Position numbers and translations under genes: made by a program
NCBI GenBank assembly: GCA_038087875.1
Contig: CM075982.1
Location: forward strand, 15,562,001-15,626,000
From: Malacoraja senta
Lineage: Eukaryota
Reading direction: 5' to 3'
Length of the DNA: 64,000 nucleotides
Notes under the pieces: model-generated
What the model was told of the DNA's origin: nothing
Database searches by the model: none
The model's input: the letters and a program-made list of their open reading frames with translations, nothing else
In this document: positions 8,629 through 48,090 of the stretch, piece after piece
Position numbering within the stretch: the first letter of the stretch is position 1
How the letters are laid out: each line of letters starts with the position of its first letter

Positions 8629-11600
8629 CAGGGCCGTGAAACTAATTTTAGGTCACGGACCAGGTAGGGCAAAGTACGACTTCACGCGGGCCGGATCAGT
8701 TGTGCACGCGTGAACGCACGCGCACGTGCTCCCACAGATTTTGTTGCTTTCATTTTTTCAACCTGCTCTCATGTGTCTCAGTCTCTGCTATAACTACAAA
8801 GTGTTTCACTTTACGAATTTCGTTTCTTTTGAAGATTGCCTAGCAAGCATTACTTTTATAATTGGTATTAACTTACAGTTGTAGGCTACAAGAAATTTGT
8901 GATGAGAGAGAGAAAAAACAATGCTATATTGGCTAATAATTTGAAATCGAACATTAGCAGACACAAATGTAGACCTAACGAAACAACTTGTTTCGTTAGG
9001 TCTACTTCTCCACCACCATTTTAGCACTGATATCTAAGAGACTCCGAGGTTGTGGCCTCTCCCAGTCAGTGCGGGTTTCTGGAACGATCGGGAAACTGGG
9101 AAGGGCCTCGAACAGAGACGGTTTGCGGTCGGCTGAGCTCTCTCCTCCGCCATGAGAGAAAAGTACCCACCATGCAACCCACACCGCTGCAATGTTGGGG
9201 GGGTTTTCCTGACAGCATTCGAACCCAGCACCCAGCCGCTCCGTACTGCACAACCTAACCCCGCTCAGTGCCCACCCCTGCCTCGTCATTGGCACAGCTG
9301 ACTGCCCAGAGGGTAGTCCCTTCTATTGGGCCAGCCTGGTGCCAGTCACGTGGGATGACGGCCAGCCCGTTTGTCTGAATCTCACCGCGTTCGGACCTGC
9401 CCCCCAAGCAGCATTTGCGGTTTGATTGGTCAGGTCGGGTGTCAGTCAAGGAGTCGTCACAATGCTGGCAGCGCGCAGCCGAGACTTCTCACACCATATA
9501 AGGAGCGCGCGGCTGACTAGGAAGATGGGTCACGCACACGAGCAGCGGCTCAGGGGAAGCCCAGATGCCCCGGAACTGGGGACATCTGCAGCCCAATCTG
9601 GTAGCGGGCCAGACTGTAGCGTTGTTCCAAATTCCTGCCATCAGTGGTGCTCCACTTCTGATCACTGCCTGTGCATGCGACTCGAGAGGCTATGGGTGGG
9701 GGGGGGGTGTGATTAAAATGCAGAGTTTTATTGGTTGTCAGAGAGGGATTTCCACGTACGACAAGCTTTTTGAAGAAATTTTGTTCTGTCATCCCGTTCG
9801 CAATTTAAAAAAAAAAAATGTTGCATGACTATTGAATCGCTGGATGAAAGTTGGGCCCAACTTCAACGCCTTCAAAATCACGGATCGCAAGTTCAGGACC
9901 AAAAAAAAGGTATGTACTGTAGGACGTTTAATTAATATTTTATCTAGTTTTTGGTATAATTTCATTTTAATCTGATGCGAAATATGTTATTGAGGCCCCT
10001 ATATCGGCCGTGTCTTGCCTGCCGGCTGTGAGTGAGCAAAATCCGATCTCTATCATAATCCACAAACATCCACTGTCAAGAAAATCAAATTCATTATTTT
10101 TTTGCACAATCGTGTCACAAGAACTAAATTATCTATATTTTGTGTTATTGTCTATCCATGATCAATATTTTCATACTAAATATCTGACTAAAAACTTCCA
10201 CAGTACATAGTTTTTAGTTGGATATTTAGTATGAAAATATTGATCATGGATAGATAATTACACAAAATATAGATAATTTAGATGTTATGACACGATCGTG
10301 CAAAAAAAATAATATTTTTATTATCTTGAGAGGGGATGTTTGTGGATTTTGAGCACATGTCTGTAAAATGGCCCTTGCCTGCTGCAGTGTTATAAACCAA
10401 CAGAGAAAAATTTATGGGAATTAAACATTCAATTCCTTCCATTTGGCAAAGAAATTCATGACAAAGTGAGATTTAAAAATCATGTTATATTGTGAATTTT
10501 TGTGTGAATGGGATCAGTTTGTTATCTGGATACTTTGGCTATTTAAAACAAATATTTTAGCCTTTTCTTAAGAATGGGATAGATGTTTAGATCTAGTAAT
10601 TGAATTTAGATGAATTTAGTTGGGCATTTACTATTTGTTTTAACTTTTAACTTGTGTTAGGCTTTTTGTTGAACAAAATCATTTCTACTTTTTTTCTAAA
10701 ACTGCAAATAAAAACTTGTTTCTACTTAATGTTGTTCAGTGGTTTTTTTCTTTACATTTTTCAGATGCCTCCGAAGAAGAAACGCAGAATTGTCAGTCCA
10801 AATGCCCAGCTTGGAATAGCTAGAGCTCACCATGAAGTGAATTTCTCTGTCATGCCCGAGTCTAAGAGGGATCTTAAAAATGGACACATCTTGTACTTGT
10901 ATACCTCGTTTGGAAAAAGTCAGTCTGAAACAGAGTCGGCTGAGTTCACATTGCTCTTTGTCGGATGCAGAAGGCTATTCATTTGCTGCTGTTAACTCAA
11001 GGGTGAGGACTCTCGTTAACCGGACTTTGCTCAAGTTTAAAAAAAACTCAGCAATCCCAAGGAACTTGAAAAATTTACGGAAATTTGTGATGAAACTTTA
11101 AAACTTCCAGAAGGCAGTCAACACATTTATTTAGATGATATTCCACTGCCTGATTGATGCTCACGATCCTGAATCCTTGACATCTGCCGAAAGCCAAGAG
11201 ACCATATTTCTAGACACTGAGGACATTGGCGATGACAGTCATAGTCTGCATCCTCCACTGAATCTAGCAACGCCAACGACAGCTGCTGCCTCTCCTGAAC
11301 CAATGCCATCGACATCTAGTGTTTCAACAAGATGTAGCAGAGAACTTGTAAGTCTTTCATCAAGGAAACATAAAAATGAAGAAAAGACTAAACTTTCTGT
11401 CTATCTCCAAGATCGCTCTTGCACTAAAGTATCGCACAAAGATCAGTGAACTTAGGGCACAGTTGAAAACTCCCAAACATGTAGTTAATCAAACCTTAAA
11501 GAGAAAGCAAAACCAAATAGATTTGATGGACAGAAAGATTCAGGAACAAAACCAAATTACGTGGGAATACTTTGGCATGAGAGCTTGCTGAAACCAAGGC

Positions 11601-14219
11601 AGAGTTTTTGAAACTTAAAAAAGCACACAGACAATTGCTCAAATTTCATGGCAGTAAGAAAAAGAGGAAAACTGTTTCGATTCGCCAATACAGAAAAGTT
11701 CAGGAAAAACTAAAGGACAGGGAAGAGGATGTGAGACGCCTCAAATTTGACAATCTTGTCCTCAAAGAAACAATCGAAACTCTGGAGGCTGCCAGTATTG
11801 TCAAGTCAAAGGTGGACCAGAAGACTTATTCCTCAACGACAAGGATGCATGTGTTTGACTGTATTGTAAACAAAACTCCTACAGCAAACATTCCAATCCT
11901 GATCCGCCAGTTGCACAAGTGGAGTGGACTTGATCTGGATAGTGATCCTCAACGCAGTGCAGTTGAACTTATGGCCTGAGAATTGGGAGCTGTTGCTGAG
12001 TTATACAGCACAGATGATCCTAGCAACAAATGATTCGACTGTTGGTTTTGATGTAACCGCCCAAGAAGACACCCATATTAACAGTGTACACTTCACCACC
12101 ACAAATTAATGTCTTTCTGCAGCAGTCGATGAATTGGCTGGTGGGACTGCTGAGGACCATGCTCAACATATTTGCGATACTGTTGACAATTTGTGTGAAA
12201 CTTACACTTATTTTAATGAGCAGCGGATTTCCAAGACACCAGGCAAACGATGATAGACAACATTACAAATACACTGAGTGATGGGTGTGCAGCTATTTAT
12301 GCTGCTATTAGGATTGTTAACAGTGAGTGGGGTAAATCTTTGAATGAGCTCTACTGCCATTTGCATCCTCTTGACTCCATCGCAGCGCCAGTTCTCTCAG
12401 CCCTCAAAAAGCACAAACAATCCAGAGGCAAAGTCTTGTTTGGTAAGGACTGTCTAGCAAGAAATGTCATACTGCAGATGAACAAACAAGAATGGAAGGG
12501 GACGCAAAAGGATGTTACATTTTTGGATGAAAGGAACATCCCCCGAGGTGTCCCCCCACGGTACCGTGGCAACCGATTACATATACTTTCCATATTAGTG
12601 GCAAGCTCATAGAACATTATGATGACTTTGTTGCCTTGCTGAATAGTGGAACATCCTGTGGGGGGATTGAGAAGCGCCATCCTCACCCAGGCTGCAGCAA
12701 AAGTAGAACTTCAGATATTGGGCTTACTTGGCAAATATCTGACTCGGCTTTGGATGAAGCCCTTCTACACTTCAAGCCAGAATCAGTTCAACCATGTTGA
12801 TGGCATCAAAGTGGTTAAAGGGGTGATTGCTGCTCTAAAGAAAGCCACACAAAATCCAGAGAACTTGATATTGGCAAGGGAAGATTTCTTCGGGGAGGAG
12901 GTGCATCTTGATGCCATGTTGACAAAACTTCGGGAGCTACCAGTACATCCACAGTTCAGTTCAATGATGAGCAGCTGTCTTCAAGCTGTCATCACTGTGT
13001 TGGAAAGGCAATATAGTAAATACTTTGAACTTGATGTAACTGAGAAACTGAAGGAGGAGACTGCATCAGCAAGATCAAACAACATTGATGTGGAGGAGAT
13101 AATGGGGATGTTTAGCTCATCGAAACTCAAATGTCCCATGTGTTATTTGTCATGTAGAATGCGGGCCTGCAAGAATAGAACAATCAACTTCCTTTATAAT
13201 CTCGAGGAGCAACATAGGGAGGAGGTGCTCTGTAAGGCAATGAAATGGGGGAGAGTGCAGAGGAACAGATGGAAGAAAAAAACAGAAGGAATTGAGAGCA
13301 GAAATCATCAAGCAACAGAAAGATAAGGAGCATGCTCGGGACACGAAAGAGGAAAAAAATAGGGGGAAAAAGAATCTGATTGAGACAGCATTTGCAGAGA
13401 TTATCCGAATTTGGACTACTCCAAATGTGATGATCTACAGGACATACTTAATGGGAAAGTAGTGGGCAGAAAGACATGTCATGCATGGTTTGAAGAGCAA
13501 AAACTTGAAGTTTACAATGCCAACATTGAAGTTGAGGAAAAACAAGGTGTACAGAGTTGCGTATTGGTTGCAGTCTGAGGTTTATGATAATGCTACTGAT
13601 TATGGTATGCCAATGTACCAGCTAGCAGCTGATGTTCTCCATGAAGACTTGGTCTTTTGCTAGAAATTGTAATTTCTTTACCTGTCTGTTACGGATTTAC
13701 AGCATATAATACAATAATATTAAAGTTCTGATCTTGAGAATATCACATTTTTGAATTTTCAAGGCAGTCTGGGTGTTTATTATTATTTCCGTCACAACTG
13801 TTAATTTTGTAATCAGCTACTTAATTTGGTAATTAACTAATTATATACTTTAATTTCAGGTCATCCAAGTAAGATGTATCATATTTGTTTCAGAATGCTT
13901 CCATCTATAATTGAAAAATTAATTCAGTTATCTTAATTTTTAAGAAAGTTATGGGCTTTTATATCAATTGACTCCTCGATCACAGCTTTTGTGTTAAGTT
14001 AATGGAACAGCAATAGGGAACAAGATGCTAATTTCTGAGTATGAAAATGACCATAACTTTTTTAATACTGAAGATATAAAAATGAATTAGGTATCGAATT
14101 AAAATTCTTTTTATGCTTTATCCGATGGGATAAATTACAGGCATGATTTTGAAAAATCTCAAAATTTTGCAACATCCCTACAGATTCGACCCCTGTGGGC
14201 CGGTAGTTTGACACCCCTG
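8629..14219. mobile_element. hAT-Charlie-type element (middle shell of nest 1)
   Basis: Ends cagggccgtgaaact / agtttgacacccctg; TSD ctctagtt / gtctagtt (7/8 match; resembles the Charlie NTCTAGAN target preference). Confidence 0.7.
10765..13663 (+). pseudogene. Degenerate DDE DNA transposase (unassigned family) with N-terminal NLS, coiled-coil-like region and C-terminal spindlin-like domain
   Basis: Frameshifted ORF pieces join into MPPKKKRR..., GFDVTAQE (D, 12050), SDGCAA (D, 12280), CHLH (12355-12366), PRYRGNRLHIL, LGLLGKYLT, NNIDVEEIMGMFS (E, 13093); stop at 13661-13663; likely element right end acatcccta at 14180. Confidence 0.75.
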
Positions 14220-15050
14220 GTCTAGTTTATTTATCACTATTTCACTCGGAATCCCTCGCGACCTCTCGCGGAACCCGAGCGTTCCGGGGAACCGCGGTTG
14301 AGAAACTCTCTAATGCCTTAGTGCAATACTGCCGTACAGCAAAGTTAATCTTCTAACTGGGATCACCTCCACTGTCCCTATTCCCGTAGCTGCAGTTGTG
14401 CATAGCTTCTCATTACAGTTTTCATGCCGTTTAACTCTTCAGCCACTCTCATCCCTAGCTTAGTAATTGCAGTTTTTGATTTGTATTGGATTAATTGAAT
14501 CTTGCCATGCACCTGGTCGTTTCTCTGGTCCATTTATGCCCACTTGATATCTGTATTGGGATTGGTTTATTAGTCTCATGGGTACCAAGATACAGCAAAA
14601 AGCTTTGTTTTGCGATTCATCCAGACAATTCATACCATATGCAGAGCTGCCAAGTAGTACGGATTTTCCTTATTTTGTACGGAAATGCGATAAGAATACT
14701 GATGTATGATTTTGCGTTGTTAAATACGGATTAAAAAAAAATCGGTATTTAACAACGCAAAATTGACCACAGACAATCGTAACAATGAGTCACCGGTGTA
14801 CCAGCCGAGGTGCAGCAGGCAGGTGGGAACATCCGAGATCGGCCTGACTTCCTATTTCATTAACATACCACTCGCCAAGGGAAATGTAATAAACCCGGTG
14901 AATTTGACTTGAGATCTTGCTGCTTAAAAAATGCAAGGATATAAAAAGTCATACTGTACCTCTAAAAATGATAGATTAAATCTATTAGTATTTTAAATTT
15001 CAAGATCTGGATGATTTTTTTTGTAAGCGTTGATCTATTTGGGGTTAAGA

Positions 15051-23700: not shown

Positions 23701-26700
23701 TCATATTCAAGAATAGATTATTTATTTATAGATAATAGTCTCAACACGTGTTTCCTTGGATTATTCAAGTATTCTAATATCTGATCATGCACCATTATTT
23801 CTAGATATTCAGTTATCCAAACAGAAATCTACCGCCCTGCCCCCCCCCCCCCACCTCCTTTGGAGATTCAACTCATTATTGTTGGCTGATAAGACATTTT
23901 GTGAATCTGTTTCAAACTCAATTGTTGAGTTTCTCTTCTTTAACCAGAGTGAATCTACATCATTTTCATTAATTTGGGAGTCGCTGAAAGCTTTTCTTAG
24001 AGGGCAGATTATCTCATATTCCTCCTATTCTAATAAAAAAACGCAATACCCGGCTTACTGAGCTTGCATCTGCTATTAATAGCCTTGATCAAGAATGTTC
24101 ATCCGATCCTTCTCCAGAACTATTTAAGAAGCGTCTTAATCTTCAGGCGGAGTTTGATCTTATTTCTACCAGAAGTGCTGAGCGACTGTTACATACTTGT
24201 GGTACTTATTATGAACATGGTGATAAACCAAATCGATTACTAGCACACCAATTAAAATGTCAGTTCACCTCACGTCTTATACCTCAAATTAATAATGTTT
24301 CTAACATGACTGTTACGGATCCTGTGGAAATGAATGCCACATTTAAATCATTTTATTCTTCCCTATACAAATCAGAATTCCCTGCTGATACTACCAAAAT
24401 GAATCAGTTCCTGGCCAATCTTGAGAATCCTACCATTGATTCTGACCGTGCCAAAGAATTGGATGTTCCAATTTCGCTTGGAGAACTACGTTTTGCAATT
24501 ACAGCAATGAAATCTAACAACGCCCCAGGTCCTGATGGATTTCCACTTGAGTTTCTAAAGAAATTTATTGATAAATTGGCACCTCTACTTTTGTTGATGT
24601 TCAATGAATCATTGGAAAATGGTTTGTTACCTCCCACACTGACTCGAGCTTCAAGAGTTCTTCTTTTAAATAAAGATAAAGACCCCACTTCCTGTGGTTC
24701 TTATAGACCTCTGGCTTTACTGAATGCTGGTGTAAAAGTTTTGGCCAAAATTATTACTATCCGTCTAGAGAGGGGTTTGTCTAGTATTATTTCTGAGGAA
24801 CAGAATGGCTTTATTAAGGGACGCCATTTATTTTTCAACACTTGTACTCTGTTAAATATTATTCATTCAACACATTCTGATAATTTACCTGCGATTGTAA
24901 TCTCATTAGATGCTGAGAAGGCATTCGATAGGGTCGAGTGGGGGGTACCTATTCGCGGTATTGAAGAAATTTGGTTTTGGATATAAATTTATCAGTTGGG
25001 TAAGATTATTTTATGCATCGCCACAAGCTAGTGTTCAAACAAATGATATTCGTTCTGAATACTTTGCAATAGAACGTGGGACACGTCAGGGCTGCCCTTT
25101 ATCTCCATCTTTCTTCGCTTTGGCTAATGAACCACTGGCCATTTCTTTAAGGTCCTCCACTTCCTTTAAAGGTGTTGTTCGTAACAGTGTTGAATATCGT
25201 TTTTCTCTGAATGCAGATGATTTGTTGCTGTATGTAACTGATCCTGCATCTTGTCTTCCGGGTATCCTAGCAATTCTGGATATTTTTCGTTCTTTTTCAG
25301 GATATAAACTAAATCTTCAAAAGAGTGAATGTTACCCCATTAACGCAGCAGGTTTGCAACTTCAGGAAGCTGATTTGCCCTTTAAAGTCTCTCGTTCTGG
25401 ATTCAAGTATCTTGGCATCAATGTGACGCGTACATTCTCAGGTCTTTTGTCTGCCAACTTTACCCTGTTCATGACTAAAGTGAAATCTGATTTTCAGAGA
25501 TGGAATAATCTGCCTCTCACTTTAATTGGGAAGATTAATGTTGTTAAAATGAATGTTTTGCCTAAATTTCTTTATTTGTTTCAATCAATTCCCTTATTCT
25601 TACCAAAACATTTTTTGACTCCTTAGACAAAATGATTAGCTCTTTTATTTGGGGTGCGAAGCCCCCGAGGGTCTGTAAATCATTACTCCAACGATGTAAG
25701 TTCAGTGGTGGTCTCGCTTTACCGAACTTTCAATTCTACTACTGGGCTACTCACATTAATAAAATACGTTGTTGGGTTGATTTTCCTTATTTAGCTTCGT
25801 GCGAACTGGAAGCCCGCTCTTGCCCTCCTTCATCCTCTATATCTGCTCTTATATATTCCTCTCTTCCAACCAAGATTTCATTGTTTATCAAAAATCCCGT
25901 TGTGCTTAATACTTTAAAGATTTGGTATCAATTCAGGAAACATTTCAAATTTGTAGCTGCATCTCCTTTAGGTCCATTATGTAACAATCACCTGTTTCCT
26001 CCCTCACATTTAGATTCAGTTTTTTCGGTATGGCATAACAGGTATACAATGTTTTCTTGATCTGTTTTCAGATGGTATTTTTAACAGCTTTACCAATTTA
26101 TCATCATTGTATGGATTACCAGCAAATCATTTTTTTAGGTACTTCCAAGTTAGACACTTTGTTTCTAAATGTTTTTCTAATATTCCTTCTTCGCCTCCAC
26201 GACAAATATGGGATAGTTTGATTACTTTCAGGACACAACAAAGAGGGATTGTTTCAGAGATGTATAATCGCATTCTGGATCTTTGCGATCAGTCCAACTC
26301 TAAACCAAGGGCTGCTTGGGAGGAAGTGCTGGGACTTCAACTTACTGAGGAGTGGTGGGATAACATTGTGGGTGGGCCATGTACTGTTACGTCTTGCACT
26401 CATTCAGTTTAAGGTTATACATAAGGTCCATTTTTCTAAATCAAGACTGTCTGGGATTTATCCAGAGGTGGAGGATAAATGTGATAGATGTTCGGGCCCA
26501 CACTGTCATCTGAGCCATATGTTTTTCCTTTGTCCACGATTACATAAATTTTGGTCCGGCTACTTTAATATAATGTCTACCGTAATGGGAATACCTCTAC
26601 AGCCATGTCCATTCATTGCCATTTTTGGGGCCCCGGATGAGTCGGGTCGATTAAACTCTATGCAAAAAGAAATTATTAATTTTACATCTTTAATAGCCAG

Positions 26701-27399
26701 ACACTGCCTACTCCTACAGTGGAAATCCCCTAACCCACCCTCTGTGTCACAGTGGCTCAAAGTTGTAGTGTTTTTTCTTAAACTTGAGAAATTAAATATA
26801 CATTGAGGGGATGTACTGATTTTTTTCACAAATGGCAACTTTTTTTATCATACTTTACAGACTTGCAGGTTCTGCCAAAGGGCTGGTTTGTTAAATGTTA
26901 TGTGTAGGTGCACTCTTCACTCTTAATTAGCCAGGGTGGGATGGGTGGGGTGTGTGACTGATGGTATGGTTGCATTATATATACATTTTATTATTATTTT
27001 TTAAATACTTTTCTTTTAAATTATTTCTATTTATTTATGTTTCTGATTTATTTATTTTCTTTTGTGTATTATTTGAGTGTTTCTTATTAACATGTCTTTT
27101 TTCATTTGTGTTGATTTATTTAAATGTAAAATAAAAAATAATAAAAACCCTTTTTGTTATAGTAATAAAACTCATTTATACCTGTATTAATGTATTTCAT
27201 CCATCATTTAAATCACATTTATATTTGTTTTTATTTAAGTTTCTAGAAGTCCATGGTGCGCGAGTGACATTGGAGGGGTATAATAATGGATCAGAGGTGT
27301 ATTGTTGAATTATTATTGATGTGACCTCTGTTGGTCTGGTAAAACCAATAATCTGGCACGGCTCTGGACCAAGGGTGCCGAAAATCGGTGGTGTATTTG
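20793..27399 (+). mobile_element. Tigger/pogo DNA transposon, internally deleted and split by an L1
   Basis: TA-flanked TIRs caggtacaccgccgattttccggca / tgccgaaaatcggtggtgtatttg; CENP-B-type HTH remnant KQAKLFHKELKL...YSEGWLQR...VCGEKLS at about 21240-21525. Confidence 0.85.
21549..27144 (+). mobile_element. Full-length, degenerate L1-clade LINE (ORF1 about 21709-22595; ORF2 about 23097-26880)
   Basis: ORF1 EDLECRSRRNNIRIVGVPE; APE TWNIRG, DIVFLQET, GGDLN, SDHAP; RT APGPDGF, YRPLALLN, SLDAEKAFDRV, RGTRQGCPLSP, ADDLLL; C-terminal CDRC..H.F..C; 13-bp TSD aaaccctttttgt at 21536-21548 and 27145-27157. Confidence 0.95.
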
Positions 27400-34856: not shown

Positions 34857-35056
34857 NNNNNNNNNNNNNNNNNNNNNNNNNNNNNNNNNNNNNNNNNNNN
34901 NNNNNNNNNNNNNNNNNNNNNNNNNNNNNNNNNNNNNNNNNNNNNNNNNNNNNNNNNNNNNNNNNNNNNNNNNNNNNNNNNNNNNNNNNNNNNNNNNNNN
35001 NNNNNNNNNNNNNNNNNNNNNNNNNNNNNNNNNNNNNNNNNNNNNNNNNNNNNNNN
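34857..35056. other. Assembly gap (200 N)
   Basis: Run of exactly 200 N. Confidence 1.
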
Positions 35057-46475: not shown

Positions 46476-48090
46476 AAGTCAAGTGAACTCAATTTTATTT
46501 CTATAGCACATTTAAAAACAACTCTCGTTGACCAAAGTGCTTTACATTAGTGCAGGTACTAACTTGCTACCACTTGCTATAGTGGTACATAGATCAACAA
46601 TACATACATAAATACATACAGCGCTCCCTCAGAGGACCTCAAGAAAGGCTTGAGAGTAGAAATAAGTTTTAAGTCTAGACTTAAAAGAGTTGATGGAGGG
46701 GGCAGTTCTGATGGGAAGAGGGATGCTGTTCCATAGTCTAGGTGCTGCAACCACAGTCGCCCGTGAGCTTATGCCTAGATGGTCAGTAACCCCAAGTCAG
46801 CCGATCTGAGGGACCTGGCGGTGGTATAGTGGGAAAGCAGATTTTTTATGTAGGTGGGGGCGAACCCGTTAAGGGCTTTGTAAACAAAAAGAAGGAGCTT
46901 GAAATTGATTCGGAACAGCACTGGGAGCCAGTGGAGAGAGGCCAGAATCGGGGTGATGTGGTCCCTTTTTCGGGTGCCCGTCAGGAGTCTCGTTGCGGCG
47001 TTTTGGACCAATTGCAGGCGGGACAGTGATGATTGGCTGATGCCAGTATAAAGGGAGTTGCAGTAATCAAGACGGGAGGAGAAAAATGAGTGGATGATCT
47101 TTTCGAGGTCGTCAAATCGGAGGAAAGGTTTTATTTTTGCTGTCGTTCAAAGCTGGAAGAAGCTAGCTTTTACCACGGCATTGACTTGTTTGTCAAGTTT
47201 CAACGCGGAGTCAAATATCACACCAAGGCTTTTGACGCGAGGTTTGAGTAATGGGGTAAGGCTACCAAGGCTGCCTGCTATCGTTTTGATGGTTTCCGAG
47301 GGGCCGAGTACGATGACCTCAGACTTACTCTCGTTTAGTTGGAGGAAGTTCTGGGCCATCCAACACTTTATATCATCGAGGCAGTGGGTAAGGCTGAGAA
47401 GATTTGATCGTTTGAGCGGGAGATAGAGTTGTGTATTGTCTGCATAGCAGTGGAAGGAAATGCCGTGCCTTTGGATGACTTGGCCTAAGGGTAGCATGTA
47501 CAGGGAGAAAAGAATGGGGCCTAAGATGGAGCCTTGTGGAACCCCGCAGCGAAGGCTAGCTGGGGAGGAGAAAGAGTTACCTATGTTAGTAGAGAAACTC
47601 CTATCTTTGAGATAGGAGACGAACCAGCTCAGGGCAGTGCCATCAATACCAACCCCGTACCGGAGACGGTCAATTAGGATGGTATGGTCGACTGTATCGA
47701 ATGCAGCGCTGAGGTCGAGAAGGAGGAGGATTGCACAGTCGCCGGAGTCAATGGTGAGAAGTCGGTCATTATGTACCTTCAACAAGGCAGACTCTGTACT
47801 GTGGTGGGCCCTGAAACCTGATTGGAAAGTTTCCAGGATGGAATTTTGGTGAAGATGAGGCATACGTTGATTTTAAATTACCGTTTCAAGGGCTTTTGAA
47901 AGGAAAGGCAGTTTGTAAATAGGTCTGTAGTTGCTAGGCAAGGTGGGGTCTGGGTTAGTTTTTTTCAGGAGAGGCTGGACCACCGCGTGCTTGAAGTAGG
48001 TAGGAACAGTGCCAGTGGCCAGAGAACTGTTGATGGCGAGGGTGCTGGGACCGGTTATAGCAATGACATCCTTCAGAAGGACAGAGGGGA
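46476..48090 (-). mobile_element. L2-clade LINE 3' part (RT)
   Basis: [61 protein letters not shown]. Confidence 0.92.

Follow-up and report, generated by a model that had tools for sequence, protein, structure and literature searches.

Chromatin-reader domains are found at the C-terminus of the integrating enzymes of transposable elements, where they are proposed to tether the enzyme to marked chromatin (bioRxiv 10.1101/2021.11.30.470311; PMC12477816). Examples are the chromodomains of chromoviral integrases, fusions with PHD or Chromo domains, and Gypsy-10_Ec32, which has a C-terminal Tudor domain; a 2025 paper names a Gypsy element as the first transposable element with a Tudor domain (PMC12477816). 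Most of the known reader-bearing elements are LTR retrotransposons, and their readers are chromodomains or PHD fingers; the enzyme described here is a DNA transposase. It shares with them the position of the reader-type domain at the C-terminus.

The solved domains closest to this tail are those of the spindlins. A spindlin is free-standing and packs three modules together, whereas the tail is one barrel joined to a transposase. Both have a five-strand Tudor-like barrel that ends in a helix followed by the last strand, and the tail differs in its longer, acidic beta3-beta4 loop. In SPIN1, the methyl-lysine pocket is made of His139, Phe141, Trp151, Tyr170, Tyr177, Tyr179, and Asp184 (PMC8213585). 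Two further recent reports implicate host SPIN1 in recognising young transposons, which it marks for silencing (PMC11499256; bioRxiv 10.64898/2026.08.20.746118).

The window analysed is a stretch of 64,000 nucleotides that contains one decayed copy of such a transposase gene (Table 1). The gene starts with MPPKKKR directly behind a splice-acceptor-like tract and is dispersed over several frames. Stop codons interrupt it in frame at 12610-12612, 12640-12642, and 13324-13326. The core profile of the family (A4) matches at 11815-12009, 12005-12238, 12208-13548, and 13265-13660 in alternating frames, and the motifs GFDVT, LSDGCA, CHLHPLD, and NNIDVEE are legible in the three-frame translation of the catalytic region. 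The last of the three stops, together with frameshifts at about 13290 and about 13400, separates the tail from the core.

Table 1. Features of the decayed element in the window (positions are those of the window)
Feature	Position	Strand	Basis
Left arm, present in very many copies in related genomes	10100..10680	.	Contig depth, joints
Decayed transposase gene	10762..13663	+	Three-frame translation; tblastn of homologues (covers 11548-13660); core profile A4
hAT-like catalytic region, RNase H-like core with all-alpha insertion domain	11815..13326	+	Homologue model; window motifs
Right arm, present in very many copies, contains tail-coding DNA	13240..14220	.	Depth table, joints
Lys/Arg/Glu-rich helical linker from core to tail, with two frameshifts	13265..13419	+	Translation; A4 profile
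C-terminal Tudor-like domain (N-terminal helix and five-strand barrel) and stop codon	13420..13663	+	A3 profile, identity to intact tails, fold
Frameshift within the tail, where 2 nt of other copies are deleted	13528..13531	+	Frame change; contigs of four runs

The tail itself is an 82-residue domain spread over two frames. Frame A (13411-13578) translates to ...GKVVGRKTCHAWFEEQKLEVYNANIE, and frame B (13481-13663) to ...LRKNKVYRVAYWLQSEVYDNATDYGMPMYQLAADVLHEDLVFC followed by a stop. The peptide that the first-pass annotation had read here with a single frameshift near 13530 is thus present in the two frames, and the break falls at 13528-13531. That annotation had drawn the domain at 13459-13663; the end holds, but the start lies about 40 nt earlier because the N-terminal helix begins near 13420. 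In each of four public runs, 8-19 contigs have an additional AA after position 13528; compared with those copies, the window copy has therefore lost 2 nt.

The six-frame translation of the window was searched with a profile (A3) of 65 homologous tails. The profile matches at only two places, 13420-13548 (profile positions 2-44, E 6.8e-12) and 13526-13660 (profile positions 38-84, E 2.6e-16). With an X placed at the break, the window tail aligns without gaps over 82 positions and is 73% identical to the tail of one intact homologue (P0153) and 71% to that of another (P0194). Judged from these sequence comparisons, the likeness to the family tails is far beyond chance. That decayed non-coding DNA was here misread as a domain has next to no probability. 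Such a reading could point to the lack of an intact open reading frame in the window copy and to the fact that its single pieces match nothing in Pfam or the PDB: a Pfam search of eight ORF pieces gave no match, phmmer of the two tail pieces against the PDB gave nothing relevant, and a feature search of a 226-aa piece returned unnamed clusters only. It is ruled out by the two profile E-values, by the identity to intact tails, and by the conservation of the tail in frame across phyla. As a pseudogene, the window copy can no longer yield the protein and is an ordinary dead repeat.

The arms of the element are far more abundant than its coding interior. Summed contig depth over the left arm is 30-100 times that of the interior, a ratio that mixes copies of several related organisms and is not a copy number, since the runs share at most 0.24 of their words with this genome. 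In contigs of four runs, joints connect 10604-10644 to 13710-13875. Depth falls beyond about 14224. The minus strand carries a terminus-like CAGGGGTGTCAAACT at about 14205-14219. Neither a left partner for this terminus nor the exact left terminus was found in the window, and shared 11-mers gave no convincing pair of terminal inverted repeats there.

Intact relatives of the gene are widespread. The 419 homologues found come from a family present in sponges, cnidarians, molluscs, annelids, echinoderms, and fishes. Twenty-five homologues, from crinoid, molluscs, cnidarians, sponge, and fish, cover the query in full, and each of them has the tail in frame at the C-terminus. At four loci (L001-L004) the open reading frame including the tail is a single exon. 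Read from N- to C-terminus, the intact enzyme has a nuclear localisation signal and coiled-coil region, then an RNase H-like DDE core into which an all-alpha domain of the Hermes type is inserted. A long basic helix follows, and a single Tudor-type beta-barrel of roughly 70 residues ends the protein. No second match of the tail profile was found in any family protein. Word-indexed searches with the tail regions of P0018 and P0160, aimed at finding the tail on other protein architectures, returned the query alone, or the query and one sibling.

The core is best compared with the hAT transposases (Hermes, with ZBED, DUF659, and FAM200-type relatives). The model of one homologue (P0018:340-971, pLDDT 93.7) superposes on Hermes transposase with Z 18.0 over 343 residues (rmsd 3.6; Foldseek E 1.4e-6), and among named Atlas clusters the nearest all belong to hAT-type families (TM 0.51-0.61). 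As in hAT enzymes, the RNase H-like core is broken by an all-alpha insertion, the catalytic layout is D / D / CxxH / E, and the short terminal inverted repeats begin with TAGG. The differences are also clear. Identity to Hermes is about 10%, the family adds a long helix (residues 477-535 of the homologue model, the linker of Table 1) and the Tudor tail, and it matches no hAT model of Pfam: five full-length homologues and one C-terminal fragment, searched at E up to 1, hit no family, hATC (PF05699) and BED included. A search of the core profile against PDB sequences likewise gave no match. The family has escaped Pfam-based surveys, since no model there fits its transposase or its tail. Two other superfamilies were considered and set aside. 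The P element transposase is a weaker Foldseek match than Hermes (E 9e-5), the insertion region is all-helical, unlike the GTP-binding insertion domain of that superfamily, and no THAP or Tnp_P_element match was found; Kolobok was rejected since the duplications are of 7 bp and not TTAA.

Evidence of mobility comes from the copies themselves. Three copies, from assembly ERZ25073254, are 98% identical over 4.67 kb and have the ends TAGGTATGAGACAA / TTGTCTCATACCTA, and the terminal inverted repeats of family copies are 14-15 bp long. Among three independent insertions, a target-site duplication is clear at one, where the 7-bp CCGATGG flanks the element (L002), and displaced at a second, where an AACATAT repeat lies 8 nt away from the left end (L003); none was seen at L004/L005. 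The usual hAT duplication is 8 bp, while that of this family is 7 bp, a length taken from two loci only. At the crinoid locus (L001), AT-rich CTATAGAA repeat arrays lie on both sides and no clean ends were found. The element is multi-copy, and internally deleted derivatives are abundant; four runs show such derivatives as well as high-copy arms. The earlier description of the tail-bearing protein as a cut-and-paste transposase is supported by its Hermes-like fold, inverted repeats, target duplication, and deletion derivatives. The family is one of widespread, un-annotated, hAT-like, cut-and-paste DNA transposons.

The AlphaFold model of the tail is a Tudor-like barrel (pLDDT 95.2). The same strand pattern is seen in a second member, inside a 632-residue model, and both models have a single C-terminal barrel. 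In the structural comparison by VIA-align, the top 24 rows are all spindlins, with rmsd 1.8-3.0 over 63-68 of 83 residues and Z 7.3-8.4, values about the range (7-8) that, according to the note supplied with the structural-search tool, small barrels commonly reach. The superposition falls on residues 123-193 of SPIN1, which is module 2 (TM by query 0.51-0.59). A structure search of the AFDB Swiss-Prot set placed Ssty1 and Spindlin-2A on top, and among named eukaryotic families in the Atlas the Spin-Ssty cluster comes first. Superposition on SPIN1 by an AlphaFold model had been put forward as a check on the spindlin assignment. It is obtained at the Z values given above, but spindlins lead the other Tudors by no more than about 1 Z. 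The RDM15 Tudor reaches 7.0 and the BAHCC1 TTD 6.2, and even the barrels of TraI and TnsB score 6.5-6.9.

Sequence profiles point the same way. When the tail profile was searched against 177,635 PDB sequences, the top 17 matches were spindlins 1-4 (E 0.0024-0.089). The next match had an E of 0.87, and other Tudors, RDM15 and BAHCC1 included, were absent. The spindlin match is marginal (E about 0.002) and limited to strands 1-3, where HMMER pairs H22, W24, Y33, G35, and Y50 of the tail with H, F, W, G, and Y of spindlin module 2. In the printed alignments, a G-x-x-[IV]-x-H-x-[WF] start with a near-invariant His is common to the tails and all three spindlin modules. The best solved matches are thus spindlin modules by both structure and sequence profile, and the barrel is, as the first-pass annotation had it, most like module 2 of SPIN1. 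Its further step, membership in Spin/Ssty by Pfam, fails. Only 2/65 tails match Spin-Ssty (PF02513) in hmmscan, with a best E of 0.11, and this model found no match in an initial set of 18 tails, nor in the five full-length homologues and the C-terminal fragment mentioned above.

Instead, the best Pfam match of the tails is the PTM/DIR17-like Tudor (PF21743), a single Tudor barrel like the tail. This model matches 10/65 tails, followed by BAHCC1 Tudor (5), Agenet (3), and SMN_Tudor (2), with Tudor_2 also weakly matched; most of these matches are weak. With 27.3 bits (E 3.2e-6), one tail (P0077) passes the gathering score of PF21743, which is set at 27.2. The tail may be a generic Tudor, single like those of PTM/DIR17 or RDM15, with a spindlin likeness that goes no further than what all Tudor barrels share. 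We hold this to be a possible but clearly minor alternative. Under it, the ligand could be another mark (H3K4me1, for instance, as for RDM15) or methyl-arginine, and the tail would have no bearing on spindlin origins. Besides the Pfam counts, it draws on a language-model search that places PTM/DIR17-like Tudor (0.81) just above Spin/Ssty (0.79), and on a structural search independent of Foldseek, in which RDM15 (PDB 7de9, an H3K4me1 reader), with rmsd 1.8 at the Z of 7.0 given above, ties with Spindlin-4 (Z 6.9). However, RDM15 is missed by the sequence profile, which yields spindlins only. The spindlin alignments take in the flanking helix and the helix-plus-strand end, whereas that of RDM15 spans 57 residues, and the start motif is common with all three spindlin modules. 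PTM/DIR17 and RDM15 are plant and protist host proteins. The tail is a Tudor-clan ('royal family') domain between Spin/Ssty and PTM/DIR17-like Tudors, and not a proven member of Spin/Ssty.

The conserved residues of the barrel suggest what it may bind. Across 65 tails from several phyla, H22 (64/65), W24 (64/65), Y50 (64/65), W51 (63/65), and D73 (65/65) are near-invariant, and position 33 is aromatic in 64/65. The equivalents of His139, Phe141, Trp151, and Tyr170 of the SPIN1 pocket, aligned by HMMER, are at least 98% conserved. By colinearity with the ends of the structural alignment, the equivalents of Tyr179 and Asp184 also appear to be kept. Tyr177, the fourth cage residue, maps colinearly to a non-aromatic position of the tail, and a conserved Tyr is found three residues upstream. 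The mean net charge of the tail is -5.4, and the barrel without its basic beta2-beta3 hairpin (+4 on average) has -7.4. An acidic barrel of this kind suits a basic peptide rather than DNA.

Small barrels at the termini of transposases and integrases often bind DNA or multimerise, as the C-terminal domains of retroviral integrases do. The tail could accordingly serve in DNA or transposon-end binding, transpososome assembly, or docking of a host protein and not read histones at all, in the manner of the small TnsB and TraI barrels or of the SH3-like domain that ends retroviral integrases. The structural neighbourhood of the TnsB N-terminal barrel (Z 6.9) and TraI (Z 6.5-6.9) fits such a role, as does the basic hairpin. 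Yet the domain is acidic overall, its invariant residues are aromatic and acidic, of the pocket type, and align with the methyl-lysine pocket of SPIN1, and TnsB and TraI are only 8-10% identical, with no sequence signal. We regard a non-reader role as unlikely.

Our preferred reading, held with slightly better than even confidence, is that positions 13420-13663 are the frameshifted C-terminal domain of a pseudogenised hAT-like transposase, and that the intact tail is a Tudor-type barrel that would tie the enzyme to marked chromatin. As the fold and the conserved residues suggest, the ligand of the acidic, aromatic-lined barrel would be a basic peptide carrying methylation, with a histone tail methylated on lysine as the likeliest case. 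Through the bound mark, the transposase or transpososome could be held at marked chromatin, and this tethering might bias integration of the element, by analogy with chromodomains and chromoviral integrases. A broader proposal is that the spindlin-like Tudor tail is a portable chromatin-reading module of several unrelated DNA-transposon lineages in aquatic animals, which steers integration to H3K4-methylated or H3K4me3/K9me3 chromatin or competes with host SPIN1, and which shares ancestry with Spin/Ssty. Candidate carriers would be this hAT-like family and AlphaFold DB entries named as THAP9-like, Mutator-like, and YqaJ-domain proteins; the C-terminal barrels of the entries T1FBE8, A0A6J8BGA8, and A0A8B6HHS2 may be homologous to the tail. 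We consider this broader proposal improbable.

What the locus exposes is a whole DNA-transposon family with a conserved Tudor-type tail and a predicted spindlin-like pocket. Should the tail prove to read a histone mark, the family would be a natural and testable case of mark-guided cut-and-paste integration. It would also offer a small reader module for targeting, with relevance to host SPIN1.

The window gene (table) is a dead repeat copy of a transposase, and its end encodes a C-terminal Tudor-like domain, here called the tail. In-frame stops occur at 12610, 12640, and 13324, and no piece of the gene matches Pfam. Both reading frames quoted for the tail in the first-pass annotation are found: one spans GKVVGRKTCHAWFEEQKLEVYNANIE, and the other extends from LRKNKVYRVAYW through EDLVFC, with the stop codon at 13661-13663. 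A profile built from 65 tails of homologues hits the window at two sites alone, 13420-13548 (E 7e-12) and 13526-13660 (E 3e-16). With an X placed at the break, the window tail aligns without gaps to intact tails at 71-73% identity. The frameshift that had been placed near 13530 is a 2-nt deletion at 13528, because contigs of other copies (8-19 in each of four public sequencing runs of related organisms) hold two additional A's there.

Features of the window (positions relative to the window)
Feature	Position	Strand	Remarks
Decayed transposase gene	10762-13663	+	Opens MPPKKKR directly behind a polypyrimidine-AG tract; repeated frame switches
Decayed reverse-transcriptase ORF	24306-26806	+	RVT_1, zf-RVT
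Decayed reverse-transcriptase ORF	47147-47863	-	RVT_1, zf-RVT
Assembly gap (200 N)	34857-35056		Far from the tail

The catalytic region was modeled from a homologous protein (P0018:340-971) with 66 homologues (pLDDT 93.7). Its secondary structure runs beta-beta-beta-alpha-beta-alpha-beta, as in the RNase H-like fold; behind it come a large insertion made of helices and, late in the chain, a helix with a conserved DAEE. The best counterpart is Hermes transposase (Foldseek E 1.4e-6; Z 18.0 over 343 residues), while P element transposase (E 9e-5) and integrase cores (Z ~11) fall well behind. The nearest named ESM Atlas clusters are hAT-type without exception.

Assembly ERZ25073254 contains three copies of the element, 98% identical over 4.67 kb, that end in TAGGTATGAGACAA and its reverse complement. 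One is flanked on both sides by a direct 7-bp CCGATGG. The second has AACATAT at its right end and once more 8 nt beyond its left end. The third shows no duplication at its flanks and is a segmental or haplotype duplicate, since its flank is common to a fourth locus. At the window element, the arms (left ~10.1-10.68 kb, right ~13.24-14.22 kb) have 30-100 times the contig depth of the coding interior in four runs from four organisms, although such depth mixes their copies and is not copy number. In the same runs, many contigs link 10604-10644 straight to 13710-13875. Such a pattern is the hallmark of abundant non-autonomous derivatives with internal deletions. The Hermes match, the Atlas clusters, the element ends, and these derivatives bear out the earlier call of a transposase, which is a divergent hAT-like family.

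The tail-coding DNA lies inside the very high-copy right arm (13240-14224, against an interior of 10680-13240) that deletion derivatives retain, and the "Tudor" sequence therefore exists in these genomes mostly as non-coding relics. The two A's at 13528 are absent from most of the right-arm depth. Just upstream of the transposase start, within the high-copy left arm, is an inverted repeat at 10053-10352 (144 nt, 88% complementary, 12-nt spacer), a foldback or MITE-like palindrome. A hAT-style terminus, CAGGGGTGTCAAACT..., is found at 14202-14219 on the minus strand where repeat depth drops (~14224). No left end that would pair with it was found in the window; this terminus could be the right end of the element or belong to a neighboring MITE. 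In one transposon copy (L004:7527-7566 / 13408-13430), the right flank recurs, inverted, within the left flank (ccatcatccatg.. vs ..catggatgatgg), and GGCATGG is present on either side, ~30 nt apart from the end. The odd junction might reflect an aberrant insertion or a palindromic target.

With the longest window piece (12646-13323) as query, an exhaustive phmmer search gave 419 homologous proteins. Those of full length have 850-1020 residues, and the same ~70-residue tail ends each one read. When 252 collected proteins were searched with a tail profile, 69 complete tails were recovered, and all 25 proteins covering the whole catalytic region carry the tail, so intact homologues do keep it at the C-terminus. 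In the genomic loci examined, the gene is one exon, tail included. Named sources are a crinoid (Anneissia), gastropods, a chiton, a limpet, Hydra, a sponge (Ephydatia), Capitella, hagfish, and several teleosts; all these proteins are labeled uncharacterised, and one alone has a precomputed Pfam domain. ESM Atlas clusters with the same overall fold are labeled commonest in Basidiomycota. Because their alignment covers residues 1-625, they probably include the tail too, and the family may range wider than animals.

The tail model (AlphaFold, 18 tails; pLDDT 95.2) opens with a helix and three long strands; after a short turn come a fourth strand, another helix, and the final strand. The identical strand pattern is seen in another member, within a 632-residue model. 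Foldseek hits in PDB are mostly Spindlin-1, -2, and -4 (TM by query 0.51-0.59, 75-78 columns, weak E-values). With a second structural aligner the top 24 entries are spindlins (Z 7.3-8.4, rmsd 1.8-3.0, 63-68 residues). These alignments always fall on SPIN1 residues ~123-193, that is, module 2, to which the first-pass annotation had likened the tail by eye. Ssty1 and Spindlin-2A lead the search of Swiss-Prot models in AlphaFold DB, and Spin-Ssty is the first named eukaryotic family in the ESM Atlas (TM 0.61, rmsd 1.6 over 59 residues). When the 65-tail profile is run against 177,635 PDB sequences, the first 17 matches are spindlins (E 0.0024-0.089); all later matches are at 0.87 or above, and there is no other Tudor among them. 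The 18-tail profile behaves the same way. In the HMMER alignment, H, F, W, G, and Y of spindlin module 2 pair with the near-invariant tail positions H22, W24, aromatic 33, G35, and Y50. The SPIN1 pocket comprises His139, Phe141, Trp151, Tyr170, Tyr177, Tyr179, and Asp184 (PMC8213585). Provided that the structural alignment stays colinear through to its last pair, model residue 83 on chain residue 193, the invariant D73 would lie on Asp184 and the mostly aromatic position 68 on Tyr179, with Tyr177 opposite a non-aromatic position.

Other Tudor families compete for the assignment. When the 65 tails are scanned individually against Pfam, a PTM/DIR17-like Tudor is found in ten (one at 27.3 bits, cut-off 27.2), a BAHCC1-like Tudor in five, Agenet in three, and SMN_Tudor in two; Spin-Ssty is found in just two (best E 0.11). 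A structure search independent of Foldseek places the RDM15 Tudor (Z 7.0) level with Spindlin-4 (Z 6.9), and language-model features give a tie (PTM/DIR17-like Tudor 0.81, Spin/Ssty 0.79). The tail could be a PTM/RDM15-type Tudor with another ligand. The original assignment to Spin/Ssty holds for structure and PDB profile, where spindlins come first, but not for Pfam. We read the tail as a bona fide Tudor-clan barrel between PTM/DIR17-like Tudor and Spin/Ssty; its pocket and ends are spindlin-like, yet Spin/Ssty membership is not demonstrable.

The aromatic and acidic pocket-type residues are strictly conserved across phyla. The barrel is acidic (net charge -5.4), and one hairpin is basic. Both the acidity and the pocket residues speak against a barrel for DNA binding or assembly, like the integrase C-terminal domain. 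The tail is proposed to bind a methylated basic peptide, most plausibly a histone H3 tail, which would tether the transposase to marked chromatin. Such tethering would resemble that of chromodomains in chromoviral integrases (bioRxiv 10.1101/2021.11.30.470311).

Fusions of transposable elements with Chromo and PHD domains have already been listed, including a hAT-Chromo in a sponge, and a Pygo-PHD retrotransposon fusion is common in cnidarians (Grau-Bové et al., bioRxiv 10.1101/2021.11.30.470311). A retroelement gene of the latter type, joining PHD_Pygo, endonuclease, and RVT_1, lies beside one copy of the transposon (L003:1-1306, minus strand). The decayed RVT_1/zf-RVT ORFs, LINE-like remnants, mark the window itself as repeat-rich. 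According to a 2025 paper, a Gypsy element is the first transposable element reported with a Tudor domain (PMC12477816). The literature searched yielded no report of a DNA transposase that carries a Tudor or spindlin-like domain, an absence there and not a proof. In AlphaFold DB, clusters with a C-terminal tail-like barrel (T1FBE8 [646-728], A0A6J8BGA8 [470-535], A0A8B6HHS2 [332-397], A0A6J8DEG9, and A0A8B6H1V2; TM by query 0.53-0.83, identity 22-29%) come mostly from mussels, plus a leech. Known here by their database names (THAP9-like HTH protein, Mutator-like transposase, and YqaJ viral recombinase), these entries suggest that the tail may be common to several mobile-element lineages.
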